A stretch of DNA of 64,000 bases from Bugula neritina (lineage: Eukaryota > Animalia > Bryozoa). The number at the start of each line of letters is the position of its first letter. Position 1 is the stretch's first letter. Below the pieces are notes generated by a model. That model did no database searches and was not told the DNA's origin. It saw only the letters and a program-made list of their open reading frames with translations. Both the position numbers and the translations under genes were made by a program. The DNA lies in the NCBI GenBank assembly GCA_964035545.1, contig OZ037766.1, forward strand, positions 3,398,522 to 3,462,521, written 5' to 3'. Below are positions 8,145 to 36,508 of the stretch, one piece after another.

Positions 8145-8263
8145 TGTTATATTTTGGCTCCGCCCATTTATTCAATATTGTATATCCGGTTTTTGTTAGT
8201 TGTAACGCTGCGCATACCAGCGTGGTTTTATTCAATTAAAAATATACCTCAGTGAATATAACA
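8145..8263 (+). repeat. 3' LTR (119 bp)
   Basis: Near-identical to 3790-3910; followed by CATAT. Confidence 0.96.
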
Positions 8264-9319: not shown

Positions 9320-9469
9320 ATGAAGGTTCTTGCATTTTTCTTGGTTGCATTCCTCATCATTGCTGCTGCTACTGCCAGCCCCTGGCCTCACCGGAAGCCC
9401 TACTACCACAGGCCAGTCTACAAACGACCGCATGTCTATGGAAAATACAACAAAGGAATCTACTACTAA
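9320..9469 (+). CDS. Secreted Tyr/Lys/Arg-rich peptide precursor, copy 1 (49 aa)
   Basis: MKVLAFFLVAFLIIAAATA-SPWPHRKPYYHRPVYKRPHVYGKYNKGIYY*; acceptor tttag 14-15 nt before the ATG, CAACATG start context, gtaagt directly after the stop. Confidence 0.9.
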   Translation: MKVLAFFLVAFLIIAAATASPWPHRKPYYHRPVYKRPHVYGKYNKGIYY

Positions 9470-12400
9470 GTAAGTACTCAATATGCTAACATTTAGTAAT
9501 ATTTTTTTAATATTTTCCAAGTGATTGTCTCAGAGTGATTAAATACAATAGGCCCCGCCACAACATACAAGTATTTCTTACCCTAATATTAAATAAAGCA
9601 GCTTAATCTAATATTTTGAAAAAAACCTGCCTGATTTATTTATATTTTTGAAAAAATGATGCTTTAATAAGTCACATGGAAAACTCGCAAACTTTTAATA
9701 GTAGAGAAGACAATCCTCAGCATACTATGAGAAGTCATTAGTCATTTGGAAAATGAATTTACATCAACTTGATTTGACAATATATAGGTGTATAGCTAAA
9801 GAGATATAGCAAAATTGATTTTAAACACTTTCTCTGGAAAGACTCTCTTGCAGCACCCTTATTCACTAAAACAGCGTAAAAAATGTATAGTGTTTTATTA
9901 GCAGTAATCTGGTGAACATACATAATGCATATTAATATAGGCATAACATGATTGCGGAACAGACGAGTATTTTAATATGTTATATAGAAACTAGTTTCAG
10001 CAGCAGCAAACCCACGGCAAGCTTCCATGCAGTGGTAACAAAAAATACTCAGCAGATCTTCATTGTTTTATATATGAATTTCTTTTTATTTGGTATATTT
10101 TCAGAATAAATGAAGCAACTGCTGTGTAAAGCTATAGATTTATCACTTAATAAAGTGACACATAATATAAAACTCAGTTGTGCTAAATTTTGAATTTTTT
10201 TTTTAAATTCCTATTTTATCTTGCATTTGCAGCACCTCAAATTAAAATCACACATATAAACATACTCATTCTCCATTTAATTTTAATAGACAGCTTACAG
10301 TTGAAGCTTTGTTCTTCTCTTTAATTATAAATTGCATTTAAAAATTTGTAATTAATTAGGATTATTTTCTACATTATTAAAAGAATGTGTGCAATGATTC
10401 ACATATATACATACTATATCACATGGTCAAGTATGAATGAAATGTGCCAAATTGAGTTTCAAATAAACAGATTTCTGCTGTCAGACATAACCATAAGTAT
10501 CAAATTTAAACTTTAGAATTAAAACATAAACAAATTTTACCTTATAAATAGACAAAAAATAAAAATTGTTTATTACCATATTATACTAGATTTCCTTATT
10601 GAGCAGTGCCGGTTTTTATTTTAATAGCTTAATATAACTTCTATATATTAGGACATGAAATTTTATGTTTATGCCAACTTTTAGCTCGGGTTGTATTGCT
10701 GTTCTTGTAAATATACAAGTTGTTTACATGCATGTATAATTAATAATGCTTTGTGTGTTGCAGAAAACGTTGGCACACTTTAATATTTTGTATTATTTAA
10801 TGAGAACAATAAAATTGCTGCACCAACCTAATTGTAGATAATGTAATAAGATGAGCTCTATAAAAGTTGTATTGATATAAATATTTTTTCATGCATGTAA
10901 TAAGTGTAAATTCAAATCACATGCCACAAGTTTAAGTTTTAATATTTTTACCTACAATATAGCAAATTCAGCAAATGCTGACATATTAAACTTTAATATC
11001 ACTTTGTTAAGTTATAAATACATGCAGTCAAATTATTGAGCTGTTAAAAAGAGTTGAGGAATTAAATTATTAGAAGTTTGTAAACTGCCACATTTAATCT
11101 GCTACCACAATTATATTTCATAAACTATATTAAATTTTAGGAAGTGAAAGATGTCATTTTGAACGCCTTGCAACTTTTGAGTTATGCATTCCAGCTTGCA
11201 ATAATTGCAAAACAAAAGTTATCAATTGACTAAGCAATCAAAAAAGTTAAAATTTGACTTTTAATTTTATTTTATATCGAGTAATTTTTATAACATTTTT
11301 TTCATTATTAATGTTATAGGCCTATAGTCAGCTTAAAATTTCAATAGTTGTTCAGTGCTTTTCGGCATACAGTATATAATGTGCCAATTCCAAAGACTGA
11401 AATATAATTAAAAACACAATTTGATGTTTTAAATTTGATACAAATATGTTCAATGAAAGATCATATTATATGTATCTTATAGGTTATAGATATAAAGCAG
11501 ACAGATGTAATATAAACTTGATTTAACTCGGTTTAAAGAAATAAAGCAGCAGTTATATCGTGTCTTGAATTGCAGTGGCATGAATCTGCAGAGACTATAT
11601 TGTTATAGCTTAGAGACTGGTTAATCAGACAATTCTTATAAATTGCATTAGTTTTTGAGTGGCCATAAATTTTGCTGCAAATTATATATTGTAAGTTAAA
11701 AACTGTTTTAAAGTAAAACTGCTACGGGACAAAAAATGTGAGCTTTTAGCATAAGCGGTTCAAAAGCTTTTGAATTTAGTTCTATATATAATATAGTCTT
11801 GCAGATTACTTTTCGACTTTGTTTGCTAAAATTATGTTTAAAAACTTCAAGTTAATTATATTTTTTAATAACTATTTGTATATATACTTAACTTGCACAT
11901 GTTTAAATAAAAACCATGCATAAAATAGCTTAGAATTAAACATTTTAGCTTGCTTTTGTATGTAAAACGCAATATTATTTTACTTAAATTTACTGCTAAT
12001 ATATGCAAAAAGATATTTTTTCAAAATAGAGTGGTGGTTTAGTTTTCATAATCTTCTCTTGTCATATTTTTTCTAGTATCAACTTTGTAAAGTTGAAAAG
12101 CTGTTAGTCTGACGGATGATTTAAATTTAAAGAGGGCTGCTTTTTTATTTCAGTTTTTGAAATTCTATGTAATATGCTGAGTTAAAATAACATTGGTTCA
12201 CTGTTTTCTTTACAGCCAAAACATGACTTGCTTTTTGCTAATGTGGAAGTATATTTTAATATCTAAAGATGATAGATTTAAATTAATCAGTGTCTTATAT
12301 TCATGTTTAAAATTTACAAAAAATTGTTGAAATATAAATAAATTTATAAAAGACAAAACAGATTGACTGTCACATCCTGAGTAACGCGTGTATTAATAGA

Positions 12401-12477
12401 ATTGGAAACATAAATTATTATATTAACTTTTCTTCTCCCACCAAGTGAAGTCATAAAGAGTCACCTCCTATACCACA

Positions 12478-12569
12478 GGTGGTCAGTTATGATGCTAAAA
12501 TTGTGTATATAAAGAAGGGAGTTTGGTTGGTGAAAGCAAACTGTTCTATACTCTCTACAAACACAGTTG
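12478..12569 (+). promoter_or_regulatory. Promoter and non-coding exon 1, peptide gene copy 2
   Basis: GGTGGTCAGTTATGATGCT, TATATAAAG at 12506, donor at 12570. Confidence 0.72.
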
Positions 12570-12919
12570 GTAAGTACACTAACATAATACTAGCCTACAA
12601 ACATATTAGTATATAGGAAGCTTGTTTTATAAGTACGTTGTTTTATATTATTTTTTGAATTGGGTTTAATTCATCTGAAATCAGTATTTGATAAAAAAAG
12701 ATTCAATTACGAATATATTTGAATTTGAATTATATAATACCCCTTTTGTGTATATATGTTGCTTTTATGTTTTGCATTTATAGTTCCTTCAGTGAATTTA
12801 TTAGCGAAATTTTTTCATAAAAATAAACATCTATAAAAGATGCTGTCATATATAAACAATATTGTATAAAGTATTTTAATAAACTATTTTGATGACTATT
12901 TTAGAATCAAACTATCAAC

Positions 12920-13078
12920 ATGAAGGTTCTTGCATTTTTCTTGGTTGCATTCCTCATCATTGCTGCTGCTACGGCCAGCTACAGACCTCACCGTAAATCC
13001 TACTACCGCAAGCCCCGCAGGCCAGTCTACAAACGACCACATGTCTATGGAAAATACAACAAAGGAATCTACTACTAA
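12920..13078 (+). CDS. Secreted Tyr/Lys/Arg-rich peptide precursor, copy 2 (52 aa)
   Basis: MKVLAFFLVAFLIIAAATA-SYRPHRKSYYRKPRRPVYKRPHVYGKYNKGIYY*. Confidence 0.92.
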   Translation: MKVLAFFLVAFLIIAAATASYRPHRKSYYRKPRRPVYKRPHVYGKYNKGIYY

Positions 13079-16000
13079 GTAAGTACTCAATCTGTTAACA
13101 TTTAGTTATATATTATTATAATATTATTATTTGTGTTCCAGGTAATTGCTTCTTGCATACATGTTGAATACAATAGATCCGCCTTAACATATAAGCACTT
13201 TTTACATTAAGATTCAATTTATATGCTTCAAGTTGCAGTAACAAGCATCTGCATATAAAAAACACAAACTGTATATTCTTTTCAAATTTCATTGCATGGT
13301 TACATGCAGTAAATTTCAGTTTTAAACCTCCTGCACGCTGCATAACTCAGTTTCTTTCAAGTTTAATGTCAATACATCATATTTTATCTGTGTGTATATT
13401 TCAACCGTTGTTCATCTGCGCTATATGTAACTTTTTTTTCTGTGTTTGTCATCTAGTCCTTGTGAACTCATGAAATGTAGCAACAGTAACCCAAACTTGG
13501 TTATAAATAGTTAATCATTATAATGTTTTGTAGTTCCCCAACACGGACCTCCACACGACCTCCAAATGACCTTGACATAATCTGACCACTCACCTTACAG
13601 CTACTATATAATTGCTCACATAAATTCGTTTTTGTTTTTCATTGTTGAAGTTTGAGAAATAAAATATATAAATAAGCAAACCCTAAAATTTGTATTTTGA
13701 ATATCATATAAGGTGAATTACTTTCCTTTGCATAAACTGCAACCTAAATATTTAACAACTGTATACGACTATATAGAGTTATTAGCATTCAGTTGTTCAC
13801 AACTCAATACAACAGCAGAACCTGTGAAAATTATAAAAATTAACGAAAAATGTGATACATATTCTATATTTCTGTTGAAAAAATTTAATAGCCATCATAA
13901 CATTATGTAGTCAAACTTTAAATCTGATAAAAGCATTTTGCTTTAACATCAATAAGCCTGCTAGGAATATTTCTGAAAAAAGTGATGATTTTGCAAAATC
14001 TTTAATAAGTTGCATGGAAAACTCACAAACTCTTAATAGTAGAGAAGACAATCCTCAGTATACTATGAGAAGTGATTATAGTCATCTGGGAAATGAATTT
14101 ACATCAACTTGATTTGGCAATAGGTGTATTATAGCTAAATGATTTGTGAAAAAGAAATATAGCAAAATTAATTTTAAACATCTTTTTTAGAAAGATTTTC
14201 CTGTAACACCTTTAATTAGTGAGACTGCATAAAAAAGTGTGTATAGTGTTTTACCAGTAGTAATCTTGTGAACATGATGTGTACTAATATAGACATATGT
14301 GTGCATAGAATTATTACAAAACAGAGAAGTATTTTACTAAGTAGAAACCAGTTTCAGCAGCAGCAAAACCACAGCAAGCTGTCAGTAGTATACCAGAAAA
14401 ATCTTCGCAGTTCTTCATTGTTTTATATATGGATTTCTTTTTAATTGGTATATTTCCAGAATAAATAAAGCAACTGTTGTGCAAATAAGCTATAGATTTA
14501 TTACCTAATAGAGTGGCACATAATATAAAATTCAGTTGTGCTAAATTTTAATTTTTTTTTAATTTCCTACTTTATCTTGCATGTGCAGCACCTCAAAAAT
14601 CACACATATAAACATACTCATTCTTCATTCAATTTTAATAGAAAGCTTACAGTTGAAGCTTTGTTTTTCTCTTTAATTATAAATTGTATTTAATAATTTA
14701 TAATAAATTATGATTATTTTCTACATTATTAAAACAATGTGTGCAATGATTTCATGTATATATACATACTATATCATGGTCAAGTATGAATGAAATGTGC
14801 CAAATTGAGTTTCAAATAAACAGATTTCTGCTGTCAGACATAACCATAAGTATCAAATTTAAACTTTAGAATTAAAAAATAAACAAATTTTACCTTATAA
14901 ATAGACAAAAAATAAAAATTGTTTATTACCATATTACTAGATTTCCTTATTGAGCAGTGCCGGTTTTTATTTTAATAACTTAATATAACTTTTATTAGGA
15001 CATGAGATTTCATGTTTATGCCAACTTTTAGCTCGGGTTGTATTGCTGTTCTTGTAAATATATACAAGTTACTTACATACATATATAATTAATAATGTTT
15101 TGTGTGTTGCAGGAAATGTTGGCACACTTTAATATTTCGTATTTGGTGAGAACAATGAAATTGATGCACCAACTTAATTGTAGATTATGTAATAAGATGA
15201 GCTCTAACGTTTTATGGATACAAATATTTTTTCATGCATGTTATAAGTGTAAATTCAAATCACATGCCACGGGTTTAAGTTTTAATATTTTCACCTACAA
15301 TATAGCAAATCCAGCGAATGCTGACATTAAACTTTAATATCACTTTGTCAAGTTATAAATGCATGCAGTCAAATTATTGAGCTTTTAAAAAGAGTTGATG
15401 AATGAAATTATTAGAAGTTTGTAAACTGCCACATTTAGTCTGCTACCACAATTATATTTCATAAACTATATTAAATTTTAGGAAAAAAAGATATTATTTT
15501 GAACACCTTGCAACTTTTGAGTTTTGCATTCCAGGTTGCAATGACTGCAAAGCAAAAATTATCAAACGATTAAGCAACCAAAAAAGTTAAAATTTGACTT
15601 CTTTTATTTTATATCGAGTAATCTTCATAACAATTTTTTCATTATTATTGTTATAGGCCTATACAGCCATCTTAAAATTTCAATAGTTGTTCAGTGCTTT
15701 TCGGCATAGATTATATAATGTGCCACTTCCAAAGACTGAAATATAATTAAAAACACAATTTGATGTTTTAAATTTGATACAAATATGCTCAATGAAAGAT
15801 CAAATATGTACATTATATAGGTAGATATGAAGCAGGCAAATGTATATAAACTTGATTTATACCTCGATTTTAAATACAAAATAAAACAGCAGTTAAATCA
15901 TGTCTCGAATTAATGCAGCAAAGACTATGTTATGGTTTAGGGACTGGTAAATTAAGAAGTTCTTATAAATTGCCTTAGTTTTTGGGTGGCCATAAATTTT

Positions 16001-16811
16001 GTTGCAAATTTTATATTGTAAATTAAAAACTGTTTTAAGCTAAAACTGCTACTGGACAAAACAATGTGAACTTTTACCATAAGTGGTTCAAAAGTTTTTG
16101 AATTTAGTTCTATCTAATTTAGTTTTGCAGATTACTTTTAGACTTCGTTTGCTGAAATTATGTTTAAAAACTTTAAGTTAATTATATTTTTAATAACTAT
16201 TTGTATATACTTGACTTGCATATGTTTGAATAAAAACTATGCATAAAAATAGCTTACAATTAAAGATTTTAGTTTGCTTTTGCATGTATGTAAAACACTA
16301 TATTATTTTACTTAAATTTACTGCTAATATATATGCAAAAAGATATTTTTCGGAAATAGAGCTGTGGCGGTTTAGTTTTCATAATCTTCTCTTGTTTTAT
16401 TTTTTTCTGGTATCGACTTTGTAAGGTTGAAAAGCTGTTAGTCTTATAGGCAATTTGAATTTAAAGAGAGCTGCTTTTTCATTTTAGTTTTTGAAATTCT
16501 ATGTAATATGCTGAGTTAGAATAACATTGGCTCACTGTTTTATTTATATTCAATGCATGACTTGCTTTTTGCTAATGTGGAAGTAGATTTTAATATCTAA
16601 AGATGATAGATTTGAATTAATCAGTGTCTTATAATCGTGTTTAAAATTTACCAAAAATTGTTGAGATATAAATAAATTTAGAAAAGACAAAACAGCTTGA
16701 CTGCCACATCCTGAGTAACACGTGTATTAATAGAATTGGAAACATAAATTATCATATTAATTTTTCTTTTCCCACCAAGTGAAGTCATAAAGAGTCACTT
16801 CCTATACCACA

Positions 16812-16905
16812 GGTGGTCAGTTATGATGCTAAAATTGTGCATATAAAGAAGGGAGTTTGGTTAGTGAAAGCAAACTATTCTCTATACTCACTAAAAACAC
16901 AGTTG
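16812..16905 (+). promoter_or_regulatory. Promoter and non-coding exon 1, peptide gene copy 3
   Basis: Same motif, CATATAAAG near 16840, donor at 16906. Confidence 0.72.
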
Positions 16906-17257
16906 GTAAGTACAATAACAGAATATTAGCCAACAAACGTATTAGTATATAAGAAACTTGTTTCAAAAGTACATTGCTTTATATTACTTTTTGAATTGAG
17001 CTTAATTCATCTAAAATCAGTATTGGATAAAAAAGGATTCAATTAAAAATATATTGAAATTTGAATTATATACATCTTTTGTGTAAATATGCTGCTTTCA
17101 TGTTTTGTTTTTCTAGTTCCTTCAGCGACTTTATAATTAGCACAATTTTATCAAGTATAATAATTTATAAAAGATGCAGCTATATATATGCACACAATAC
17201 TGTATAAAGTACTTTAATAAACTACTTTGATGATTATTTTAGAATCAAACTATCAAC

Positions 17258-17413
17258 ATGAAGGTTCTTGCATTTTTCTTGGTTGCATTCCTCATCATTG
17301 CTGCTGCTACTGCCAGCTACAGACCTCACCGTAAGTCCTACTACCGCAAGCCAGTCTACAAACGACCTGTTTATGGAAAATACAACAAAGGAGTTTACTA
17401 CTATGGTAAGTAG
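17258..17413 (+). CDS. Secreted Tyr/Lys/Arg-rich peptide precursor, copy 3 (51 aa, C-terminal GK)
   Basis: MKVLAFFLVAFLIIAAATA-SYRPHRKSYYRKPVYKRPVYGKYNKGVYYYGK*. Confidence 0.9.
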   Translation: MKVLAFFLVAFLIIAAATASYRPHRKSYYRKPVYKRPVYGKYNKGVYYYGK

Positions 17414-21128: not shown

Positions 21129-21220
21129 GGTGGTCAGGTATGATGCTAAAATTGTGTATATAAAGAAGGTAGTTTGGTTGGTGAAAGCAAACTGTTCTAT
21201 ACTCTCTACAAACACAGTTG
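21129..21220 (+). promoter_or_regulatory. Promoter and non-coding exon 1, peptide gene copy 4
   Basis: Same motif, TATATAAAG at 21157, donor at 21221. Confidence 0.72.
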
Positions 21221-21573
21221 GTAAGTACACTAACAGAATATTAGCCAACAAGCGGATTAGTATATAGGAAGCTTGTTTTACAAGTACATTGCTTTATATT
21301 ATTCTTTGAATTGGGCTTAATTCATCTAAAATCAGTATATGATAAAAAAGGGTTCAATTAAAAATATATTGAAATTTGAATTATATAATACACCTTTTGT
21401 GTACATATGTTGCTTTTATGTTTCGCATTTATAGTTCCTTCAGTGACTTTATTAGCACAATTTTTTCATGAAAATAAAAATCTAAAAAAGATGCTGTCAT
21501 ATATAAACAATATTGTATTCAGTACTTTTATAATAAACTACTTTGATGGCTACTTTAGAATCAAACTATCAAC

Positions 21574-21720
21574 ATGAAGGTTCTTGCATTTTTCTTGGTT
21601 GCATTCCTCATAATTGCTGCTGCTACTGCCAGCTACAGACCTCACCGTAAGTCCTACTACCGCAAGCCAGTCTACAAACGACCTGTCTATGGAAAATACA
21701 ACAAAGGAATCTACTACTAA
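21574..21720 (+). CDS. Secreted Tyr/Lys/Arg-rich peptide precursor, copy 4 (48 aa)
   Basis: MKVLAFFLVAFLIIAAATA-SYRPHRKSYYRKPVYKRPVYGKYNKGIYY*. Confidence 0.93.
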   Translation: MKVLAFFLVAFLIIAAATASYRPHRKSYYRKPVYKRPVYGKYNKGIYY

Positions 21721-24700
21721 GTAAGTACTCAATCTGTTAACATTTAGTTATATATTATTATAATATTATTATTTGTGTTCCAGGTAATTGCTTCTTGCAT
21801 ACATGTTGAATACAATAGATCCGCCATAATATACAAGCACTTGTTTCATTAAGATTCAATTTATATGCATCAAGTTGCAGTAACAGGCATCTGCATATAA
21901 GAAACATAAACTGTACTCTTTTTAATTTTTATCGGTTACAGTAAATGTTTGTTTTAAACTTCCTGTACATTGCATAATTTAACACCTTTCAAGTTTAGCT
22001 TCAATCTATCATATTTTATCTGTGTGTATGTGACAACAGCCATTATTTGTTATAGATGTAACTTTTTTTCTGTGTTTGTCATCTAGTCTTTGTGAACTCA
22101 TGAAATGTAGCAACAGTAACCCAAACTTGGTTATAAATAGTTAATCATTATAATGTTTTGTAGTTCCCCAACACCGACCACCACACGACCTCCAAATGAC
22201 CTTGACATGATCTGACCACTCACCTTACAGCTACTATATAATTGCTCACATAAATTCGTTTTTGTTTTTCATTGTTGAAGTTTGAGAATTAAAATATATA
22301 AATAAGCAAACCCTAAAATTTGTATTTTGAATATCATATAAGGTGAATTACCTTCCTTTGCATAAACTGCAATCTAAAGATTTAACAACTGTACGACTAT
22401 ATAGAGTTATTACCTTTCAGTTGTTCACAACTCAATACAACAGCAGAACCTGTGAAAATTAAAAAATTTACGAAAAGAGTGATAAATTATACACTTCTTT
22501 GAAAAAATTTAGTAGCCATAATAAAGTTATATATTTCAACTTTAAATTAGATAAAAAAATTTTTTAACATTAAGCAAATATAACAAACTATAGCAAAACA
22601 TTGTTTAAACACATTAAGTTGATTAAAATAACATTATCAGCTACATTTATTATATAATTATTGAAAACTTCATCAATTTGCTAAAATTATATGAATAAAA
22701 GCAGCTTAATCTAATATTTTAAAGACCTGTCTGATTTATTTATATTTTTGAAAAAATGAAGCTTTAATAAGTCACATGGAAAACTCGCAAACTTTTAATA
22801 GTAGAGAAGACAATCCTCAGCATACTATGAAAAGTCATTAGTCATTTGGAAAATGAATTTACATCAACTTGATTTGACAATATATAGGTGTATAGCTAAA
22901 GAGATATAGCAAAATTGATTTTAAACACTTTCTCTGGAAAGACTCTCTTGCAGCACCCTTAATCACTGAGACTGCATAAAAAATGTAGTGTTTTATTAGC
23001 AGTAATCTGGTGAAAATAATGCGTATTAATATAAGCATATGTGTGCATATAACATGATTGCAGAACAGAAGAGCATTTTAGAACATTATGTAGAAACTAG
23101 TTTCAACAGCAGCAAAACCACAGCAAGCTTCCAGTAGTAACAAAAAATACTCAGCAGTTCTTCATTGTTTTATAAATGGATTTCTTTTTAATTGGTATAT
23201 TTTCAGAATAAAAAAGCAGCTGTTGTGTAAAGCTATATAGAGTGGCACATAATATAAAACTCAGTTATGCTAAATTTCAAATTTTCTTTTAAATTCCTAC
23301 TTTATATCTTGCATTTGCAGCACCTCAAAAATCACACATATAAACATACTCATTCTCCATTTAATTTTAATAGACAGCTTAAAGTTGAAGCTTTGTTTTT
23401 ATCTTTAATTATAAATTGCATTTAATATTTTATGATTAATTATGATTATTTTCTACATTATTGGAAAAAAATGTGTGCAATGATTCACGTATATACATAC
23501 TATATCATATGGTCAAGCATGAATGAAATGTGCCAAATTGAGTTTCAATTAAACAGATTTCTGCTGTCAGACATAACCATAAGTATCAAATTTAAACTTT
23601 AGAATTAAAAAATAAACAAAGTTTACCTTATAAATAGACAAAAAATAAAAATTGTTTATTACCATATTACTAGATTTCCTTATTGAGCAGTGCCGGTTTT
23701 TATTTTAATAACTTAATATAACTTTTATTAGGACATGAGATTTCATGTTTATGCCAACTTTTAGCTCGGGTTGTATTGCTGTTCTTGTAAATATATACAA
23801 GTTATTTACATACATGTATAATTATTAATGTTTTGTGTGTTGCAGAAAATGTTGGCACACTTTAATATTTTGTATTTGGTGAGAACAATAAAATTGATGC
23901 ACCAACTTAATTGTAGATAATGTCATAAGATGAGCTCTAACATTTTGTTGATACAAATATTTTCTCATGCATGTTATAAGTGTAAATTCAAATCACATGC
24001 CACAAGTTTAAGTTTTAATATTTTCACCTACAATATAGCAAATCCAGCGAATGCTGACATTAATCTTTAATATCACTTTGTTAAGTTATAAAGACATGCA
24101 GTCAAATTATTGAGCTGTTAAAAAGAGTTGATGAATGAAATTATAAAAAGTTTGTAAACTGCCACATTTAGTCTGCTACCACAATTATATTTCATCAGCT
24201 ATATTAAATTTTAGGAAGTGAAAGATGTCATTTTGAACACCTTGCAACTTTTGAGTTTTGCATTCCAGCTTGCACTAATTGCAAAACAAAAGTTATCAAA
24301 TGACTAAGCAACTGAAAAAGTTAAAATTTGACTTCTTTTATTTTATATCGAGTAATCTTCATAACGATTTTTCCATTATTAATGTTATATATAGGCCTAT
24401 AGTCAGCTTAAAATTTCAATAGTTGTTCAATGCTTTTCGGCATACAGTATATAATGTGCCACTTCCAAAGACTGAAATATAATTAAAAACACAATTTGAT
24501 GTTTTAAATTTGATACAAATATGTTCAATGAAAGATCATATATGTACATTATATAGGTAGATATGAAGCAGGCAAATGTAATATAAACTTGATTTATACC
24601 TCGATTTTAAATATAAAATAAAACAGCAGTTATATCATGTCTTGAATTAATGCAGCAAAGACTATGTTATGGCTTAGAAACTGGTTAATCACGAAGTTCT

Positions 24701-25552: not shown

Positions 25553-25644
25553 GGTGGTCAGTTATGATGCTAAAATTGTGTATATAAAGAAGGGAGTTTG
25601 GTTGGTGAAAGCAAACTGTTCTATACTCTCTACAAACACAGTTG
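25553..25644 (+). promoter_or_regulatory. Promoter and non-coding exon 1, peptide gene copy 5
   Basis: Same motif, TATATAAAG at 25581, donor at 25645. Confidence 0.72.
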
Positions 25645-25991
25645 GTAAGTACACTAACAGAATATTAGCCTACAAACATATTAGCATATAAGAAGCTTGT
25701 TTTATAAGTACGTTGTTTTATATTATTTTTTGAATTGGGTTTAATTCATCTGAAATCAGTATTTGATAAAAAAAGATTCAATTAAGAATATATTTGAATT
25801 ATATAATACACCTTTTGTGTAAATATGCTGCTTTTATGTTTTGTTTTTCTAGTTCCTTCAGTGACTTTATAATTAGCACAATTTTATTAAGTATAATAAT
25901 TTATAAAAGATGCTGCTATATATGCACACAATACTGTATAAAGTATTTTAATAAACTTCTTTGATGGCTAATTTAGAATCAAACTATCAAC

Positions 25992-26138
25992 ATGAAGGTT
26001 CTTGCATTTTTCTTGGTTGCATTCCTCATCATTGCTGCTGCTACTGCCAGCTACAGACCTCACCGTAAGTCCTACTACCGCAAGCCAGTCTACAAACGAC
26101 CTGTCTATGGAAAATACAACAAAGGAATCTACTACTAA
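25992..26138 (+). CDS. Secreted Tyr/Lys/Arg-rich peptide precursor, copy 5 (48 aa)
   Basis: Protein identical to copy 4. Confidence 0.93.
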   Translation: MKVLAFFLVAFLIIAAATASYRPHRKSYYRKPVYKRPVYGKYNKGIYY

Positions 26139-28084
26139 GTAAGTACTCAATCTGTTAACATTTAATTACATTCATAATATTTTTTGTGTTCCAGGTGATG
26201 GCTTCTTGCATACATGTTTATAAATACAATAGATCTGCCTTAACATATAAGCACTTTTTACATTAAAATTCAATTTATATGCTTCAAGTTGCAGTAACAA
26301 GCATCTGCATATAAAAAACATAAACTGTATACTCTTTTCAAATTTCATTGCATGGTTACACGCAGTAAATTTCAGTTTTAAACCTCCTGTACGCTACATA
26401 ACTTAGTTTCTTTTAAGTTTAATGTCAATTCATCATATTTTATCTGTGTGTATATTTCAGTTGTTTATCTGCACTAGATGTAACTTTATTTTCTGTGTTT
26501 GTCATCTAGTCTTTTTGAACTCATGAAATGTAGCAACAGTAACCCAAGTGGTTATAAACAGTTAATTATTATAATGTTTTGTAGTTCATGCACCAACACT
26601 GACCTCCACGCGACCTCCAAATGACCTTGACCACTCACCTTACAGCTACTATATAATTGCTCACATAAATTCGCTTTTGTTTTTCATTGTTGAAGTTTGA
26701 TAATTAAAATATATAAATAAGCAAACCCTAAAATTTGTATTTTGAGTATCATATAAAGTGAATTACTCTCTTTTGCATAAACTGCAACCTAAAGATTTAA
26801 CAACTGTAAGACTATATAGATTTAATAGCATTCAATTGTTTGAAACTTAATACAGCATGCAACAGAATCTGTGAAAATTCTAAAACCAATGAGAAAAGTG
26901 ATAAGTTCCACATTTGTTTTGAAAAATTTAGTAGCCGTAATAAAGTTATGTAATTTAACTTTACATCTGGTAAAAATATTTTGTTTTAACATCAAGCAAA
27001 TACAACAAACTATAGCAAAACATCATTTTATAAATACATTAAGTTGATTAAAATAACATAATCAGCTACATTTATTATATAATTATTGAAAACTGCATCA
27101 ATTTGCTAAAATTATATGAATGAAAGCAGCTTTTAATATTAAAAAGAATTGTCCTATGTAGTTACATTTTTGAAAAAAAATGATGTTGTTGCAAAGCTTT
27201 AATAAGTCACATGGAAAACTCACAAACTCATAATAGTAGAGAAGACAATCCTCAGTATACCATGAGAAGTCATTAGTCATTTGGGAAATCAGTTTACATC
27301 AACTTATTTAGACAATAGGTGTATATATAGCTAAGTTATTTGTGAAAAAGAGATATAACAAAATTTATTTTTAAACACTTTCTCTGCAGGAATTTCCCTG
27401 TAAAACCTTTAATTAAAGATAATGCATGAGAAAATTATATAAGGTTTGACCAGTAGTAATCTTGTGCACATAAAAAGCATTAATATAGACATATGCGTGC
27501 ATAACATTATTACAGAACAAAGGAGTATTTTAGGAAGTAGAAACCAGTTTCAGCAGCAGCAAAAACCACAGCAAGCTTCTAGTAGTAACAGAAAAATTCT
27601 GCAGTCCAATCTTCATTGTTTCAAATATGAATTTCATTTTGATATATTTTCATAACAAATTAAGCAACTGTTGTGTAAAGCTACAGATTTACCACTAAAT
27701 AAAGTGGCATATAATAGAGATTTTTCTTAAATTCCCACATTATGCATTTGCAGCACCTCAAAAATTGCACATGAACATACTCATTCTTTATTTAATTTTA
27801 AAAAAATTTTATAAAATTTTAAAGTTTTGTTTTCATGTTCAACATAAATTTTAAAATACAAACAGCCAACAATAATTATGTTTTTGCAGCCATAATTAAA
27901 ATTATCAACATAAATTCAACAGAAAAGCCTCTATGTTGTGTCAAAAATAAATCAGATTTGCTCCAACAATGGCAGTATTCAAAATTTGAATGCTGTCAAT
28001 TTGGAAAACCAAATTATTGCACACTTTTTATTTTAATTTAGAATCGCCTGCACAAATAGCTTTGCGTAAATAAGCAACCTGCAT

Positions 28085-28390
28085 GACATCTTACAGTAGA
28101 CATCTTACAGTAGACAGCTTACAGTAGACAGCTTACAGTAGACAGCTTACAGTAGACAGCTTACAGTAGACAGCTTACAGTAGACTTCTTACAGTAGACA
28201 GCTTACAGTAGACAGCTTACAGTAGACTTCTTACAGTAGACAGCTCACAGTAGACAGCTTACAGTAGACAGCTTACAATAGACATCTTACAGTAGACATC
28301 TTACAGTAGACAGCTTACAGTAGACAGCTTACAGTAGACAGCTTACAGTAGACAGCTTACAGTAGACAGCTTACAGTAGACAGCTTAGAG
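28085..28390. repeat. 14-bp minisatellite (GACAGCTTACAGTA)n, about 22 units
   Basis: Head-to-tail units with minor variants and no spacers. Confidence 0.95.
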
Positions 28391-30124
28391 TTGAAGCTTT
28401 GTTTTTATTTTTAATTATAAATTAATCAATTATGATTACTTTTTACATTATTGAAAAAAAAATTGTGCAATGATTCACGTATACATACTATGGTCAAGTG
28501 TAGCTTTATGAAAGAAATTCGCCAAATTGAGTTTTAAATAAACAGATTTCTGCTACCAAACATAGCCATGAAATGAATATCAAATCTAAACCTTTAAATT
28601 AGAACATAAACAGCATAAACTTTACCTCATAAATAGACATAAAAAGAAAAATTGTTTATTGCCATATTATAATAGATTTCCTTATTGGATGGACACAGAA
28701 ATTTATTGAGCAGTGCCGGTTTTTATTTTAATAACTTAGTGACTTTTATTTGGACATAAATTCTTATGTTTATGCCAACTTTTAGCTCGAGTTTTATTGC
28801 TGTTCTTGTAAATATAGAAGTTATTTATATACATTTATAATTAATAATGTTTTGTGTGTTGCAGCAAGTGTTAGCACATTTCAACGTTTTACACTTGATA
28901 ATAATTATGACCCCATTCATAATAGGTTTAGACTATGAAATTGATGTAACAATTTTATTTTATGTGATATACAATAAATTGAGCCCTATAATTCAGTTTT
29001 ATTGTTGAAACATCTTTTTCAAACATGCAAAAGTAATTTCATATTATAAGCAAAACATTTAAGATTCAGAGATATTTTTACATTTTTTATAGCGAGCATC
29101 AAATCAAGTGAATTTATATCCTTTAATATGATATTAGATTTCAAAACTATTTCATTAAGCTATAAATATATCAAAGCTGTTGAATTGTTAAAAAGATTTG
29201 TTAAATAGAATTATTATATATTTTTGAACTGTCACATTTAGCCCACTATCATATTTCATAAAAAATATGCTATATTTAACTTTTAAGAAGGGGAAGATGC
29301 CCTTTTATAAAGCCTTGCAAGTTTTGAGTCTTACAGTGGAACTTGCAATAATTACGAAACAAAATAATTTAAAACTCAGGCCTCAAGTATAATTATTAAA
29401 TAATTAGGTAACTAAAAAAGTTAAAATTTTTTTTTTTATTTGATATTGAATATCTGATAAAACAATCATTCTATTATTAATGTATAGTGAGCTTAAAACT
29501 GTAATATCGTTTTAGTGTTTTGCAGCATAGAGTTAGGAATAATGTGCCATTCATTAAGATTGTAATATAACTAAAAAAATCATTTAATGCTTTAATTATG
29601 ATACAAATATATTTAATTAAAGGTCATATAAATGGATTGAAATATATATAAAATTGATTTAAGTTGCTTTAAATAAATAAAACAGTAATTTGATAATGTA
29701 TTGAATTCCAGTAAAATAATTCTATAGAGACAATTAAATATAGTTTAGAAACTTGTTAACCAAGCGGTTTGCATAAAAAAGCAATAGTTTTTGTTATAGG
29801 TATAATCTTTGCTGCAATTTTCATTACATAAGTTGCAAACTGTTTTGAGCTAAAACTTATACTAGGCAAAGCAATGTGAGTTTATATAGCACAAGTTTTT
29901 CAAAAGCTTTTGATAATTTGTAGTCTTATATGGTTTTTCAAATTAGTTTTAAACTTTTTTACTAAAATTCTGTTTAAAAAATTTATAACAATTATTTTTT
30001 TCTTATTAGCTATTTTTATATCCTTATGCTTGCACATAGTTGAATAACAAGCATAAAAATAACTTAGCTTGCTCTCAAGTAAAACACAATATTCTTTTAC
30101 TCAAATTTACTGCTAATTTATATA

Positions 30125-30586
30125 TGAAGACCTCAAAGGAAAAATGGCATATGTCCAATTTTGCGAATTTTCACAAATTGAAAATTAAAATTTGGAAACT
30201 TGCAACTGCTATCGATATGAATCAATTCTAACCAAATTTGATATTATGGTTTTTGAACATGTTTCAAACAACTAGACAAAAAGAAATTTGACCAAGTTTA
30301 CATAAAATACACAATTTGCTAGTCTAAAAATATTTCACATGCGCACCGTCATTGGTCAATTGTTATCACATGACTGGACATAAGTTATTTTTCTTTTGTG
30401 ATGACTGGACATAGGTCTTTGTTGCTTTGGGGTGGGTTTGAAATCCAGCCTTAAAACCATGGACAAAATTTGTTTTTCTCTTTGATAATTTTATGACTAA
30501 AACTTTAATACTTGAGCTATCCAAGGGAAGAAAAATCTCATTTTTTTTGAAAATGGACAAATGTCGTTTTTCTTTTGAGGTCTTCA
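30125..30586. mobile_element. MITE / non-autonomous DNA transposon, about 460 bp
   Basis: Imperfect ~40-bp terminal inverted repeats TGAAGACCTCAAAGGAAAAATGGCATATGTCCA...TGGACAAATGTCGTTTTTCTTTTGAGGTCTTCA flanked by TA (or ATAT); absent from the paralogous site at about 35420. Confidence 0.9.
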
Positions 30587-31080
30587 TATGTTATAAAAAG
30601 ATATTTGCTCGAAAATTGCGTGGCAGTTCATTTTTTATAATCTTTCCTTTTTTTTCTATTCTTATAATCAACTTTGTAAGGCTGTTAGTCTGATAGTTTA
30701 CTTGAACTTAAAAAAAGTTATACCTCTTTATTTCAGCATTTGAAATTCTATAACGCTGAGCTGAAAGAATTTTGCGTCACTGTTTTATTTATAGTCAATA
30801 CATGACTTGCTTTTTGCTAATGTGGAAGTAGATTTTAGTATCTAAAGATGATAGATTTAAATTAATCAGTGTTTTATATTCGTGTATAAAATTTACAAAA
30901 AATTGTTAAAATATATTAACTAAAAAACAAGGTAGTTTTGTTGCCAAATTTTCTACCGCTGCATCCTGTGTAACGCGTGTATTAATAAAATTGGAAACAT
31001 AAATTATCATATTTTCTTTTCCCACAAAGTGAAATCATTAAATGTCTGTCCAATGATCACTTCCTATATATACCGCACAT

Positions 31081-31172
31081 AGTGGTCAGTTATGATGCTA
31101 AAATTGTGCATATAAAGAAGGGAGTTTGGTTGGTGAAAGCAAACTGTTCTATACTCTCTACAAATACAGTTG
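31081..31172 (+). promoter_or_regulatory. Promoter and non-coding exon 1, peptide gene copy 6
   Basis: AGTGGTCAGTTATGATGCT, CATATAAAG near 31110, donor at 31173. Confidence 0.72.
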
Positions 31173-31520
31173 GTAAGTACACTAACATAATATTAGCCTA
31201 CAAACATATTAGTATATAGGAAGCTTGTTTTTTAAGTATACGTTGCTTTATTTTGAATTGGACTTAATCCATCTAAAATCAGTATTTGATAAAAAAGGAT
31301 TCAATTAAAAATATATATTGAAATTTGAATTATATTACATCGTTTGTGTAAATATGCTGGTTTTATGTTTTGTTTTTCTAGTTCCTTCAGTGACTTTATA
31401 ATTAGCACAATTTTATTAAGTATAATAATGTATGAAAGATGTTGCTATATATGCACACAATACTGTATAGAGTATTTTAATAAACTATTTTGATGACTAT
31501 TTCAGAATCAAACTATCAAC

Positions 31521-31667
31521 ATGAAGGTTCTTGCATTTTTCTTGGTTGCATTCCTTATCATTGCTGCTGCTACTGCCAGCTACAGACCTCACCGTAAGTC
31601 CTACTACCGCAAGCCAGTCTACAAACGACCTGTCTATGGAAAATACAACAAAGGAATCTACTACTAA
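31521..31667 (+). CDS. Secreted Tyr/Lys/Arg-rich peptide precursor, copy 6 (48 aa)
   Basis: Protein identical to copy 4; one synonymous change relative to copy 5. Confidence 0.93.
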   Translation: MKVLAFFLVAFLIIAAATASYRPHRKSYYRKPVYKRPVYGKYNKGIYY

Positions 31668-33327
31668 GTAAGTACTTAATATGTTAACATTTAATTATAT
31701 TCATGATATTATTTGTATTCCAGGTGCTTGCATACATGTTGAATACAATAGATTCGCCATAACATATAAGCACTTTTTACATTAGGATTCAATTTATATG
31801 CTTCAAGTTGCAGTAATAAGCATCTGCATATAAAAAACATAAACTGTATACTCTTTTCAATTTTTACCGGTTACAGTGAATGTTTGTTTTAAACTTCCTG
31901 TACATTGCATAATTTAACACCTTTCAAGTTTACTTTCAATCTATCATATTTTATCTGTGTGTATGTGACAACAGCCGTTATCTGTTATATGTAACTTTAT
32001 ATTATGCGGTTTTATCGAGTCTTTTTGAACTTATGAAATGTAGTAACAGTAACCCAAGTGGTTATAAACAGCTGATTATTTTAATGTTTTGTAGTTCATG
32101 CACTAACACGGACCTTCACACAGCCTCCAAATGACCTTGACATGATCTGACCACTCACCTTACAGCTAATATATAATTGCTCACATAAATTCGTTTTTGT
32201 TTTTCATTGTTGAAGTTTGAGAATTAAAATATATAAATAAGCAAACCCTAAAATTTGTATTTTGAATACCATATAAGGTGAATTACTCTCTTTTGCATAA
32301 ACTGCAACTTAAAGATTTAAAAACTGTATGACTTTATAGATTTAATAGCATTCAATTGTTTGAAACTTAATACAACATGCAACACAACCCGTGAAAACTC
32401 TAAAATTAAAGAAAAAAGTGATAAGTTCTACATTTGTTTTGAAAAATTTAGTAGCCATAATAAAGTTATATATGTATGTAGTTTAACTTTACATAAAAAT
32501 ATTTTGCTTTAACATCAAGCAAATATAACTTAATTATTATTATAGCAAAACATTGTTTAAACACATTAAGATGATTAAAATAACACGATCAGCTATATTT
32601 ATTATATTGAAAACTGCATCAATTTGCTAAAATTATATGAATGAAAGCAGCTTTTAATATTGAAAAAGCTGTCCTATGTATAGTTACATTTTTGAAAAAA
32701 ATGTTGTTTTTGCAAAGCGTTAATAAGTTACGGAAAACTGGCAAACTCTTAATAGTAGAGAAGACAATCCTCAGTATACCATGAGAAGTTACTGGTCATT
32801 TGAGAAATCAGTTTACATCAACTTGGTTTGACAGAAAGTGTATATTTGTAATTTTGCAGTCTGATTTTCATTGTTTCAAATATGAATTTCATTTTGATAT
32901 GTTTTCATAACAAATAAAACAACTGTTGTGTAAAGCTACAGATTTACCACTAAATAAAGTGGCATGTAATATAAATTTTTCTTCAATTCCCACATTATGC
33001 GTTTGCAGCACCTCAAAAATTGCACATAAACATACTCATTCTTCATTTAATTTTAAAAAGCAGCTAAAGTTTTGTTTTCATGTTCAACATAATTTCTAAA
33101 ATACAAACAGCCAACTAATTATGTTTTTGCAGCCGTAATTAAAATTACCAACATAGATTCAACAGAAAAGCCTCTATGTTGTGTGAAAAATAAATCAGAT
33201 TTACTCCAACAATGGCAGTATTCAAAATTTGAATGCTGTCAATTTGGAAAACCAAATTATTGCACACATGTTATTTCAATTTAGAATCATCTGCACAAAT
33301 AACTTTGCGTAAATAAGCAACTTGCAT

Positions 33328-33587
33328 GACATCTTACAGTAGACAGCTTACAGTAGACATCTTACAGTAGCCAGCTTACAGTAGACAGCTTACAGTAGAC
33401 AGCTTACAGTAGACAGCTTACAGTAGACAGCTTACAGTAGACAGCTTACAGTAGACAGCTTACAGTAGACAGCTTACAGTAGGCAGCTTACAGTAGACAG
33501 CTTACAGTAGACAGCTTACAGTAGACAGCTTACAGTAGACAGCTTACAGTAGACAGCTTACAGTAGACAGCTTACAGTAGACAGCTT
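33328..33587. repeat. 14-bp minisatellite (GACAGCTTACAGTA)n, about 18 units
   Basis: Paralogous position to 28085-28390. Confidence 0.95.
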
Positions 33588-34102
33588 TGTTTTTATTTTT
33601 AATTATAAATTAATCAATTACGATTACTTTTTACATTATTGGAAAAAAATTGTGCCATGATTCACGTATACATACTATGGTCAAGTGTAGCTTTATGAAA
33701 GAAATTCGCCAAAGTGAGTTTTAAATAAACAGTTTTCTGCTACCAAACATAGCCATAAATATCAAATCTAAATCTTTAAATTAGAACATAAACAGCATAA
33801 AGTTTACCTCGTAAATAGACATAAAAATAAAATTTGTTTATTGCCATATTATAATAGATTTCCTTATTGGATGGACACAGAAGTTGAAACATTATTGAGC
33901 AATGCCGGTTTTTATTTTAATAACTTAATGACTTTTATTTGGACATAAATTCTTATGTTTATGCCAACTTTTAGCTCGGGTTGTATCGCTGTTCTTGTAA
34001 CTACAGAAATTATTTATATACATATTTATAATTAATAATGTTTTGTGTGTTGCAGCAAATGTTAGCACATTTCAAAGTTTTACATTTGATAATAATTATG
34101 AG

Positions 34103-34303
34103 CCCATTCATAATAGGTTTAGACCATAAAATTGATGTAACAACTTTATTTTATGTGATATACAATAAAATAGGCCCTATAATTCAGTTTTATTGTTGAA
34201 ACCCATTCATAATACCTAGGTTTAGACTATGAAATTTGGGTAACAACTTTATTTTATGTGATATACAATAAAATAGGCCCTATAATTCAGTTTTATTGTT
34301 GAA
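34103..34303. repeat. Local ~100-bp tandem duplication
   Basis: CCCATTCATAATA...TTTTATTGTTGAAA occurs twice; single copy at about 28912-29010. Confidence 0.8.
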
Positions 34304-35916
34304 ACATTTTTTTCAAACATGCAAAAGTAATTTCATATTATAAGCAAAACATTTAAGATTCAGAGATATTTTTACATTTTTTATAGAGCATCAAATCAAG
34401 TGAATTTATATACTAATATGATATTAGACTTCAAGATTATTTCATTAAGCTATAAATATATCAAAGCTGTTGAACTGTTAAAAAGATTTGTTAAATAGAA
34501 TTATTACATATTTTTGAACTGTCACATTTAGCCCACTATCATATTTCATAAACAATATGCTATATTTAACTTTTAAGAAGGGGAAGATGCTCTTTTATAA
34601 AGCCTTGCAAGTTTTGCGTCTTACAGTGCAGAACTTGCAATAATTACGAACCAAAATAATTTAAAATTCAAGCTTCAAGTATAATTATTAAATGATTAGG
34701 TAACTAAAAAAGTTAAGATTTAATTTTTTTATTTGATATTGAATATCTGATAAAACAATCATTCTATTATTAATGTATAGTGAGCTTAAAACTTTAATAT
34801 CTTTTTAGTGTTTTGCAGCATAGAGTTAGGGATAATGTGCCATTCATTAAAATTGTAATATAACTAACAAAAAACCATTTAATGTTTTAATCCGATACAA
34901 ATATATTCAATTAAAGGTCATATGAATGGATTTGAAATAAATAAATAACATATAAAATTAATTTAAGTTGCTTTAAATAAATAAAACAGTAATCTGATAA
35001 TGTATTGAATTCTAGTAAAATAATTCTATATAGAGACAATTAGATATAGTTTAGAAACTTGTTAACCAACCCGTTTGCATAAAAAAGCAATAGTTTTTGT
35101 TATAGGTATAATGTTTGCTGCAATTTTCATTACATAAGTTACAAACTGTTTTGAGCTAAAACTTATACTAGGCAAAGCAATGTGAGTTTATATAGCACAA
35201 ATGTTTCAAAAGCTTTTGACAATTTGTAGTCTTATATGGTTTTTCAGATTAGTTTTGAACTTTTCTACTAAAATTCTATTTAAAAAATTCAAAATATTTT
35301 TTTTCTTATTTGCTATTTTTATATCCTGAGCTTGCACATAGTTGAATAACAAGCATAAAAATAGATTAGTTTGCACCGTGAGTAAAACAAAATATTCGTT
35401 TACTCAAATTTACTGCTAATTTATATGTTATAAAAAGATATTTGTTCGAAAATTTCGTGGCAGCTCATTTTTTATAATCTTTCCTTTTTTTTTATTTTTA
35501 TGATCAACTTTGTATAGCTGTTAGTCTGATAGATTACTTGAACTTTGAAAAAGTTATACCTCTTTATTTCAGCATTTGAAATTCTATAATGCCGAGCTGA
35601 AAGAATTTTGCGTCACTGTTTTATTTATAGTCGACACATGACTTGCTTTTTGCTAATGTGGAAGTACATTTTAATATCTAAAGATGATAGATTTAAATTA
35701 ATCAGTGTCTTATATTCGTGTATAAAGTTTACAAAAAATGTTGAAATATATTAACTAAAAACAAGGTAGTTTTGTTGCCAAATTTTCGACCGCTGCATCC
35801 TGTGTAACGCGTGTATTAATATAGAATTGGAAACATAAATTATCATATTTTCTTCTCCCACAAAGTGAAATCATTAAATGTCTGTCCAATGATTGCTTCC
35901 TATATATACCGCACAT

Positions 35917-36008
35917 AGTGGTCAGTTATGATGCTAAAATTGTGTATATAAAGAAGGGAGTTTGGTTGGTGAAAGCAAACTGTTCTATACTCTCTACAAA
36001 CACAGTTG
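35917..36008 (+). promoter_or_regulatory. Promoter and non-coding exon 1, peptide gene copy 7
   Basis: Same motif, TATATAAAG at 35945, donor at 36009. Confidence 0.72.
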
Positions 36009-36361
36009 GTAAGTACACTAACATAATATTAGCCTACAAACATATTAGCATATAAGAAGCTTGTTTTTTAAGTACATGAGTTTTATATTATTCTATTAAT
36101 TAAGCATAACTTTCATCAGAAATCAGTATTTGATAAAAATGATACAATTCATAATATTATATTTAAATAAAAATTACATACACTTTTTGTGCTTATAATA
36201 TTTTGGTTATTTATAAGTTCCTATTTCAGTGCCTTATTATATTAGCATATTTTTGTTAATTATTAGAAATTTTAAAAAATGCTGTCATATATAAACAATA
36301 TTGTATTCAGTTCTTTTATAATAAACTATTTTGATGACTATTTTAGAATCAAACTATCAAC

Positions 36362-36508
36362 ATGAAGGTTCTTGCATTTTTCTTGGTTGCATTCCTCATC
36401 ATTGCTGCTGCTACTGCCAGCTACAGACCTCACCGTAAGTCCTACTACCGCAAGCCAGTCTACAAACGACCTGTCTATGGAAAATACAACAAAGGAATCT
36501 ACTACTAA
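36362..36508 (+). CDS. Secreted Tyr/Lys/Arg-rich peptide precursor, copy 7 (48 aa)
   Basis: CDS nucleotide-identical to copy 5; probable 3'UTR exon after tttgcag at 36853 with AATAAA downstream. Confidence 0.93.
   Translation: MKVLAFFLVAFLIIAAATASYRPHRKSYYRKPVYKRPVYGKYNKGIYY

Follow-up and report, generated by a model that had tools for sequence, protein, structure and literature searches.

The 64,000-nucleotide stretch of Bugula neritina DNA analyzed here (the window) carries a head-to-tail array of very small genes. Six-frame translation yields exactly seven intact plus-strand open reading frames of this kind, 48 to 52 amino acids long. All seven begin with the same 19-residue signal peptide, predicted from its n-, h-, and c-region pattern. 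The initial annotation had counted seven copies of 48 to 52 codons with an invariant 19-residue signal peptide, and each of these points was borne out. The array and its coding sequences lie as follows.

8860 to 36950, plus strand: whole array, seven head-to-tail units
8889 and near 8952, plus strand: TATA box and exon 1 donor of copy 1
9320 to 9469, plus strand: copy 1 coding sequence, 49 amino acids, from six-frame translation
12920 to 13078, plus strand: copy 2 coding sequence, 52 amino acids; TATA box at 12506
17258 to 17413, plus strand: copy 3 coding sequence, 51 amino acids; TATA box at 16842
21574 to 21720, plus strand: copy 4 coding sequence, 48 amino acids, major form
25992 to 26138, plus strand: copy 5 coding sequence, 48 amino acids, major form; TATA box at 25581
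31521 to 31667, plus strand: copy 6 coding sequence, 48 amino acids, major form; TATA box at 31111
36362 to 36508, plus strand: copy 7 coding sequence, 48 amino acids, major form; TATA box at 35945

The tandem units measure about 3.6 to 5.5 kb (ATG-to-ATG distances of 3600, 4338, 4316, 4418, 5529, and 4841 nt), and the central ones are approximately 88 to 89% identical. Copy 1 is the most divergent: its mature part contains Pro-Trp and an extra His, and its exon 3 was lost through a deletion of about 830 nt. Copy 2 has in-frame insertions of 9 nt and 3 nt, and copy 3 ends in Tyr-Tyr-Tyr-Gly-Lys, a possible amidation signal. In copy 7, intron 2 and the 3' flank are unlike those of the other copies and are shared by the final copy in the B. 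neritina draft genome.

The genes are real, with three exons of which one is coding, and the splices are visible in RNA contigs from a sister lineage. The structure is given here for copy 4.

21157 to 21220, plus strand: TATA box (21157) and noncoding exon 1, with the donor after 21220; an exon 1-like loose end occurs in RNA contig X2
21221 to 21558, plus strand: intron 1, 338 nt, GT to AG, within the 5' untranslated region (UTR) and ending 15 nt before the ATG
21559 to 21720, plus strand: exon 2, which holds the entire coding sequence, with a donor immediately after the stop codon
21721 to 22163, plus strand: intron 2, 443 nt, GT to AG, within the 3' UTR; the joint from 21720 to 22164 is present in RNA run X2, and a matching loose end is also found in run X1
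22164 to 22308, plus strand: exon 3 (3' UTR), with ATTAAA near 22288 and its 3' end taken from an RNA contig

Because a TATA box, splice sites, and a conserved exon in the 5' UTR accompany every copy, and because spliced RNA contigs exist, the reading frames are not chance occurrences. Transcripts, whose absence the initial annotation had named as grounds for rejection, were thus found in a sister lineage. Assembly duplication was likewise ruled out: the flanks of the units differ by 5 to 30%, orthologous copies occur in an independent draft and in two metagenome assemblies, and spliced RNA is present. Nor are the reading frames borne by a transposon, as the Gypsy element at 3790 to 8260 is separate from the array and missing from the other assemblies.

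Copies 4 to 7 encode one and the same 29-residue mature peptide, with 8 Tyr, 5 Lys, 4 Arg, 3 Pro, and no Asp, Glu, or Cys, the composition reported earlier. Tyr makes up 28%, Lys plus Arg 31%, Pro 10%, and Gly 7% of this 3.7-kDa peptide, whose pI is about 10.2 and whose net charge is +9. Across the peptides compared, the net charge ranges from +7 to +11 and Pro from 9 to 17%. Pro-Val-Tyr occurs twice, once continuing as Val-Tyr-Lys. An amphipathic helix was ruled out, as the amphipathic moment is no higher than that of shuffled sequences (P = 0.72). The initial annotation had also stressed that many tyrosines stand next to Lys or Arg; this is true of only four of the eight, compared with 4.3 expected from composition (P = 0.73), which is the chance level. 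Among the upstream subfamilies, only one reaches P = 0.05 for such adjacency, and three fall below chance.

The seven-copy view missed a larger cluster, of which the array is only one subfamily. The family comprises at least 31 Tyr-rich genes lying within 210 kb, with about 40 family matches on the contig. All 31 genes have a Met-Lys-Val signal start and a splice acceptor near the ATG, and most have a donor shortly past the stop codon. The family pattern is a single coding exon with a Tyr-rich, acid-free mature part, and the array copies fit it. A promoter motif common to the subfamilies was ruled out; there is merely a weak similarity in the TATA region. Taken over the 31 genes, the mature parts contain 24.6% Tyr, which accounts for 93% of all aromatic residues, less than 6% aliphatic residues, and almost no acidic ones. 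Several compositional classes are represented, including Tyr/Asn/Gly/Arg-rich and His-rich relatives, and 12 of the 31 members end in Gly-Lys or Arg-Gly, which are possible amidation signals.

The array evolves by concerted evolution. The mature coding part is identical in four of the seven copies and 87 to 100% identical among all copies in the window; coding exons have been homogenized within each lineage rather than diversified, and introns retain positional orthology. Direct orthologues are present in GenBank as the B. neritina draft-genome hypothetical proteins EB796_010975 and EB796_010977, which are 86 to 90% identical to the array peptides and have the same flanking genes. Both are annotated with false N-terminal extensions and have no assigned function, so that the initial description of the peptides as unannotated holds only in part. 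The stretch of draft contig seen carries three copies, one of them inverted, compared with seven here. No relatives outside Bugula were found among 5.8 billion proteins or 1.84 billion representatives, no Pfam family was matched by the peptide, and neither the JGI metagenome contigs nor the ESM Atlas (best 0.76) contained a homologue outside Bugula. These searches agree with the initial impression that no described family could be recognized, and a match to a characterized family, which was to count against that proposal, did not appear. The peptide family is Bugula specific, small, secreted, Tyr rich, and cationic. The array, the composition, and the absence of a known family together support the proposal of a dosage-amplified, secreted, cationic, Tyr-rich peptide of no described family.

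What the peptides do can be approached through their composition and through the oxidases encoded in the genome. The adhesive, sclerotizing, or antimicrobial role proposed at the outset is still the right shortlist, but the specific argument from DOPA was not supported. Using Pfam PF00264, the locus's own exons, and a bacterial tyrosinase as queries, we found only one tyrosinase-like locus (on contig C7), and PF00372 revealed no arthropod-type phenoloxidase; these numbers are lower bounds, as short exons can be missed. When the tyrosinase-like gene was inspected exon by exon, Phe was found where the CuB ligand His216 of the Streptomyces tyrosinase stands, so at least one CuB histidine has been lost. 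Haem peroxidase loci are numerous (87 exon matches, with tandem clusters), and so are multicopper oxidase genes, which also form clusters. No oxidase gene lies within the 264 kb examined, a span that includes 200 kb upstream.

We favor, with a probability of roughly 0.4, the reading that the array encodes a peptide produced in large amounts for a matrix, cuticle, or cement, in which it would be hardened via tyrosine cross-links. The 29-residue peptide would be made in bulk and secreted, together with its Tyr/Asn/Gly/Arg-rich and His-rich relatives from the cluster, into the cuticle, the ovicell or brood wall, or the rhizoid or larval cement. Its Lys, Arg, and Tyr residues may bind polyanions and surfaces, and a haem peroxidase or laccase-type oxidase might then cross-link it oxidatively (Tyr-Tyr or Tyr-Lys), by the route taken in insect chorion and in the Pro-Val-Tyr-Lys proteins of plant walls and not via DOPA. 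The Tyr-rich, acid-poor composition of the 31 genes is typical of cross-linkable structural proteins, the lack of an amphipathic moment is in agreement with such a role, and the homogenized coding exons fit selection for the dose of one product. In extensins, Val-Tyr-Lys has been named as a motif for cross-linking by peroxidase (PMC8160292, PMC3149072), although a three-residue match can be due to chance, and peroxidase-mediated di-tyrosine hardening is established for small Tyr-rich proteins of the insect eggshell (PMC13409908). Extensins, the plant wall proteins, and chorion proteins are likewise secreted and rich in Tyr, carry Val-Tyr-Lys or Tyr-Tyr sites, and serve as building blocks that peroxidase hardens, but they are far longer and repetitive, and the resemblance is one of motif and composition only. 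The presence of peroxidases is permissive only, because they are common in all animals, and no oxidase gene is present in the DNA examined. A composition close to that of mussel foot proteins also speaks for this reading, and the small size and low Gly content of the peptide speak against it.

The composition also invites comparison with the mussel foot proteins, for which we used the table of PMC5132118. The array peptide has the Mfp-like profile of a small, secreted protein with 20 to 30% Tyr/DOPA and 25 to 30% cationic residues (cosine of 0.88 to Mfp-5), and the upstream subfamilies approach Mfp-3 (0.7 to 0.94). By analogy, it could be a true DOPA wet adhesive, its tyrosines hydroxylated by tyrosinase in a gland and the peptide priming the surface to which larvae or rhizoids attach. 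Its 28% Tyr and 31% Lys plus Arg match Mfp-5 (30% DOPA, about 28% cationic) and Mfp-3f, the several compositional classes recall multicomponent glues, and the animal is a sessile fouler. Like Mfp-3 and Mfp-5 of Mytilus, the peptides are Cys free and strongly cationic and form multivariant families. However, at 29 residues the peptide is shorter than Mfp-3 (5 to 7 kDa) and of a size usual for antimicrobial peptides, is Gly poor (compared with about 20 to 29% Gly), contains Pro and Val, belongs to another phylum, and shows no sequence homology to these proteins, as only Bugula matches appeared in the two protein collections. Because Tyr-cation adjacency is at chance and the sole tyrosinase-like locus found lacks a copper ligand, DOPA chemistry is weakened, and we regard it as quite unlikely.

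A linear cationic antimicrobial or antifouling peptide, comparable to mussel myticalins or crayfish astacidins, is somewhat less likely than the favored reading. Released over the surface of the colony or within the brood chamber, such a peptide would bind bacterial envelopes by charge and perhaps shape the symbiont community. A net charge of +9 in 29 Cys-free, Pro/Arg/Tyr-rich residues and the possible amidation signals of the family suit this role, and Arg-Pro-Val-Tyr is also found in apidaecin (PMC7736402). In myticalins, a conserved signal peptide is combined with a cationic mature part of 23 to 42 amino acids that contains Pro-Arg-Tyr repeats and is often amidated, and the genes have three exons and a short intron immediately ahead of the ATG (PMC5577615), much like the array genes; this layout, shared by the multigene myticalin/modiocalin families, is common and no proof of kinship. 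Unlike in those families, the array has no anionic C-terminal propeptide and no dibasic Lys-Arg release site, as the reading frame does not extend beyond the cationic part; the stop codon lies in exon 2, the mature region is homogenized rather than hypervariable, and there is no homology, nor a sequence match to any known peptide. Proline-rich antimicrobial peptides are defined by at least 25% Pro (PMC7736402), a level that the peptides compared do not reach; their net charge is positive, as in that class. Amphipathicity is absent, and almost any peptide so charged kills somewhat in low salt. Very unlikely, in our view, is a neuropeptide, hormone, or pheromone precursor or a gamete or brood-coat peptide. 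The signal peptide, the basic pairs (Arg-Lys and Lys-Arg), and the possible amidation of copy 3 are features of such precursors, but two of the three pairs are followed by Pro, and Pro after a basic pair blocks convertase cleavage. There are no repeated flanked peptides, hormone genes do not resemble a 31-gene family of low complexity, and a text search of the neuropeptide survey of B. neritina (PMC4990251) gave no trace of the peptides.

As a fouling species B. neritina is of major importance, and it hosts the symbiont that makes bryostatin. In the literature searched, no adhesive, cuticle, or antimicrobial peptide of this species is described. The Bugula peptide family probably helps to build or protect the outer wall or the glue of the colony. 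A bolder proposal, and rather an unlikely one, is that bryozoans evolved their own multicomponent underwater cement or cuticle from 30 to 40 tiny Tyr-rich cationic peptides, cured by peroxidase or laccase without tyrosinase or DOPA. As the 29-residue peptide can be synthesized, its cross-linking, adhesion, and killing are directly testable, and so is the makeup of bryozoan glue and cuticle. The apparent absence of a working tyrosinase tests whether a mussel-like composition implies DOPA chemistry. If true, a cement or cuticle cured by peroxidase or laccase would give bryozoan adhesives their first molecular parts list, and its components would be the shortest natural peptides of their kind.

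Six-frame translation of the window yields seven plus-strand ORFs that share a 19-residue leader (identical in 7/7), and together with residue counts it bears out the numbers that the initial annotation gave for this array.

Start 9320, plus strand: copy 1, 49 residues
Start 12920, plus strand: copy 2, 52 residues
Start 17258, plus strand: copy 3, 51 residues
Start 21574, plus strand: copy 4, 48 residues
Start 25992, plus strand: copy 5, 48 residues
Start 31521, plus strand: copy 6, 48 residues
Start 36362, plus strand: copy 7, 48 residues

Because the leader combines a basic residue with 13 hydrophobic ones and ends in Ala-x-Ala, signal cleavage after Ala19 is likely, judging by the residue pattern alone. 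Copies 4 to 7 have one 29-residue mature peptide in common, with 8 Tyr, 5 Lys, 4 Arg, and 3 Pro and without acidic residues or Cys (computed values: 3731 Da, pI 10.2, net charge +9). It contains Pro-Val-Tyr twice, once continuing as Val-Tyr-Lys, and three Tyr-Tyr or Tyr-x-x-Tyr sites. The position of Tyr next to Lys or Arg, to which attention had been drawn earlier, is uninformative, as 4 of the 8 Tyr adjoin a basic residue versus 4.3 expected from shuffles (p = 0.73). The units are arranged head-to-tail and measure 3.6 to 5.5 kb each, those in the middle of the array being about 88 to 89% identical. A 14-nt minisatellite of 19 to 23 copies (window 28085-28399 and 33328-33587) occurs only in the spacers following copies 5 and 6 and is the mark of a separate duplication of these two units.

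The closest proteins are the B. neritina hypothetical proteins EB796_010977 (90% identical) and EB796_010975 (86%), from a separate draft genome, along with three JGI metagenome proteins. The peptides had been called unannotated; in fact, these two orthologues are in GenBank, although only as hypothetical proteins whose models carry false N-terminal extensions ahead of the same Met-Lys-Val start. The window's introns are only about 76 to 90% identical to their draft counterparts, and therefore this 216-Mb genome and the draft probably come from separate lineages within the B. neritina complex of sibling species. No Pfam family was matched, a search of 1.84 billion representative proteins gave one match and none outside Bugula, a family-profile protein search returned Bugula-type matches only, and the JGI metagenome contigs and the Atlas gave no match and no usable match, respectively. 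The earlier view that this is not a described family thus holds across these collections, on sequence criteria. Our literature search, which covered a minority of subscription journals, found no paper on this family; short Tyr-rich cationic secreted peptides in tandem clusters are already known from mussels, tubeworms, and insects.

In every copy a TATA box stands about 60 nt ahead of a conserved donor. The 5' UTR intron is about 340 nt long and ends 15 nt before the ATG; there is a single coding exon, with a donor immediately after the stop codon. Transcripts of the array genes were sought and matching contigs were found in two sequencing runs, both guessed to be RNA: X1, RNA-seq of a symbiont metagenome from 2016, and X2. 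Contigs from both runs cover the coding and 3' exons. The X2 contig joins 21720 to 22164, with removal of a 443-nt GT..AG intron, and its 5' loose end is similar to exon 1 of the first-position copy; in the X1 contig a loose end falls at this 3' junction. As the indels in these contigs agree with draft-type alleles, transcription is that of sister-lineage orthologues and not of the window's own alleles. Copy 1, the most divergent of the seven coding sequences, has undergone a deletion of about 830 nt (junction at window 9586-9594) that took away its exon 3 and poly(A) signal; its orthologue and the remaining copies retain exon 3 there. Copy 1 may be decaying or may use an AATAAA at 9592. The 3' flank of copy 7 is peculiar to it within the array and recurs in the last draft copy.

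The surroundings of the array contain several other elements.

3790-8260: Gypsy/Ty3 LTR retrotransposon
1-440, minus strand: paralogous long-exon ORF
39143-40222, 43977-44882, 48392-49471, and 52182-53042, plus strand: paralogous long-exon ORFs
46798-47244, plus strand: ORF of about 148 aa

The retrotransposon, with gag-protease, reverse transcriptase, and integrase in separate frames and 116-nt LTRs that are 99% identical, lies about 630 nt upstream of the copy 1 TATA box. Neither the draft nor the metagenome assemblies contain it, which marks the insertion, from these comparisons, as recent and polymorphic. The five long-exon ORFs (about 290 to 360 aa, 24 to 72% identical) lie on both sides of the array. 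Pfam gave no Cry domain I-like match for these paralogues, and neither PDB sequences nor the Atlas gave one for ORF 39143-40222. Tandem repeats of 12 nt (43381-43963 and 51389-51683) stand just upstream of ORFs 43977 and 52182, the former within a 512-codon open frame running into ORF 43977. The ORF at 46798, which encodes a signal peptide, a Lys-Lys site, and three short repeats (Leu-Asn-Ser-x-Gly), looks like a neuropeptide precursor, of the pedal peptide/orcokinin type or FDSIG-like.

Exons and introns of the array have different histories. Among the seven copies the 57-nt signal region has only three variable sites, and the mature coding part is 87 to 100% identical versus 66 to 96% for the introns. 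In the intron trees copies cluster by position across lineages: copy 1 joins the first copies of the draft and metagenome assemblies (100/100), and copy 7 joins the draft's last copy (100/100; here the tool warned of a long branch). In the coding tree they cluster by lineage (96/93). A codon that is Ser in every draft copy is Thr in every window copy, and one silent base likewise separates the two sets. Coding sequences grouped by lineage and introns by position are the signature of exon-confined gene conversion, under selection that retains many copies of one product. Such homogenization fits selection for dose better than diversification of the defense-peptide type, although a defense role is compatible with it.

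The array belongs to a wider family. In 200 kb of upstream sequence there are 24 further single-coding-exon genes, 54 to 170 kb before the window's start, in both orientations, encoding 69 to 100 aa and falling into five subfamilies by composition (Tyr/Gly/Asn/Leu; Tyr/Arg/Ser/Asn; His/Gly/Tyr/Asn; Tyr/Arg/Asn; Arg/Asn/Gly/Tyr). The first eight coding bases are identical in all 31 genes, an acceptor lies close before the ATG in 31/31, and in most a donor follows within about 20 nt of the stop, which argues for a single origin. A family-profile search of the genome gave 40 matches, all on the window's contig (C2); nine lie beyond the main cluster (about 2.37-2.44, 15.78, and 19.86 Mb), mostly as pairs in opposite orientation. 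Summed over the 31 genes, the mature parts contain 24.6% Tyr, 15.8% Asn, 12.6% Gly, 11.7% Arg, 9.8% Ser, about 6% each of Lys and Pro, 0.1% acidic residues, and no Cys; Tyr makes up 93% of the aromatic residues, and 12 of the 31 genes end in Gly-Lys or Arg-Gly. No other subfamily is as short or as rich in Lys and Pro as the window array.

We favor, at a probability of roughly 0.4, a structural role: the peptide would be secreted in bulk as a unit from which cuticle, the brood wall, or cement is built and would then be cured through Tyr radical coupling, all steps after secretion being ones that we infer. This reading is preferred because of the mussel foot protein-like composition, the Val-Tyr-Lys and Tyr-Tyr sites, and the precedent of the insect eggshell, in which small Tyr-rich proteins are hardened by peroxidase via di- and tri-tyrosine (PMC13409908). 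Mfp-5 is the foot protein that the 29-mer closely resembles in composition (cosine, 0.88) and Mfp-3 the one that the upstream subfamilies resemble, but the 29-mer is Gly-poor and half the size. Val-Tyr-Lys is the motif cross-linked by tomato extensin peroxidase (PMC8160292). The genome has 87 haem peroxidase exon matches, in many loci and tandem clusters, and 18 multicopper oxidase matches. One of the latter (G000:C13:35207-35560) lies in an uninterrupted 619-aa frame and may stem from contaminating bacteria or from gene transfer; the others are intron-rich.

A true DOPA glue, which shares the resemblance to mussel foot proteins, seems improbable. The Pfam PF00264 search found a single locus, on contig C7, which was also the sole match with its own two copper-site exons and with a bacterial tyrosinase; PF00372 had no match in the genome.

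G000:C7:2089560-2092700: L034, the sole tyrosinase-family locus found

Read exon by exon, L034 has Phe in its CuB exon at the position of Streptomyces tyrosinase His216, and a pacifastin/VWC-like module precedes the tyrosinase domain; it is a probable pseudoenzyme. These tyrosinase and oxidase searches give lower bounds, so an active tyrosinase may yet exist, but within them there is no sign of a tyrosinase expansion as in mussels or tubeworms. An NCBI-based survey of spiralian tyrosinases has no Bryozoa entry (PMC11667028). The strongest rival to the structural reading is an antimicrobial role, which we consider rather unlikely. Mussel myticalins match in size, Pro/Arg/Tyr make-up, amidation, and three-exon layout, but they carry an anionic propeptide and hypervariable cores (PMC5577615), both absent from the array peptides, whose Pro content is below the 25% threshold that defines proline-rich antimicrobial peptides (PMC7736402). 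A role in signaling or in a gamete coat is more improbable still than a DOPA glue. Structural and defensive roles could also go together. The Bugula peptide is easy to test and is relevant to fouling.
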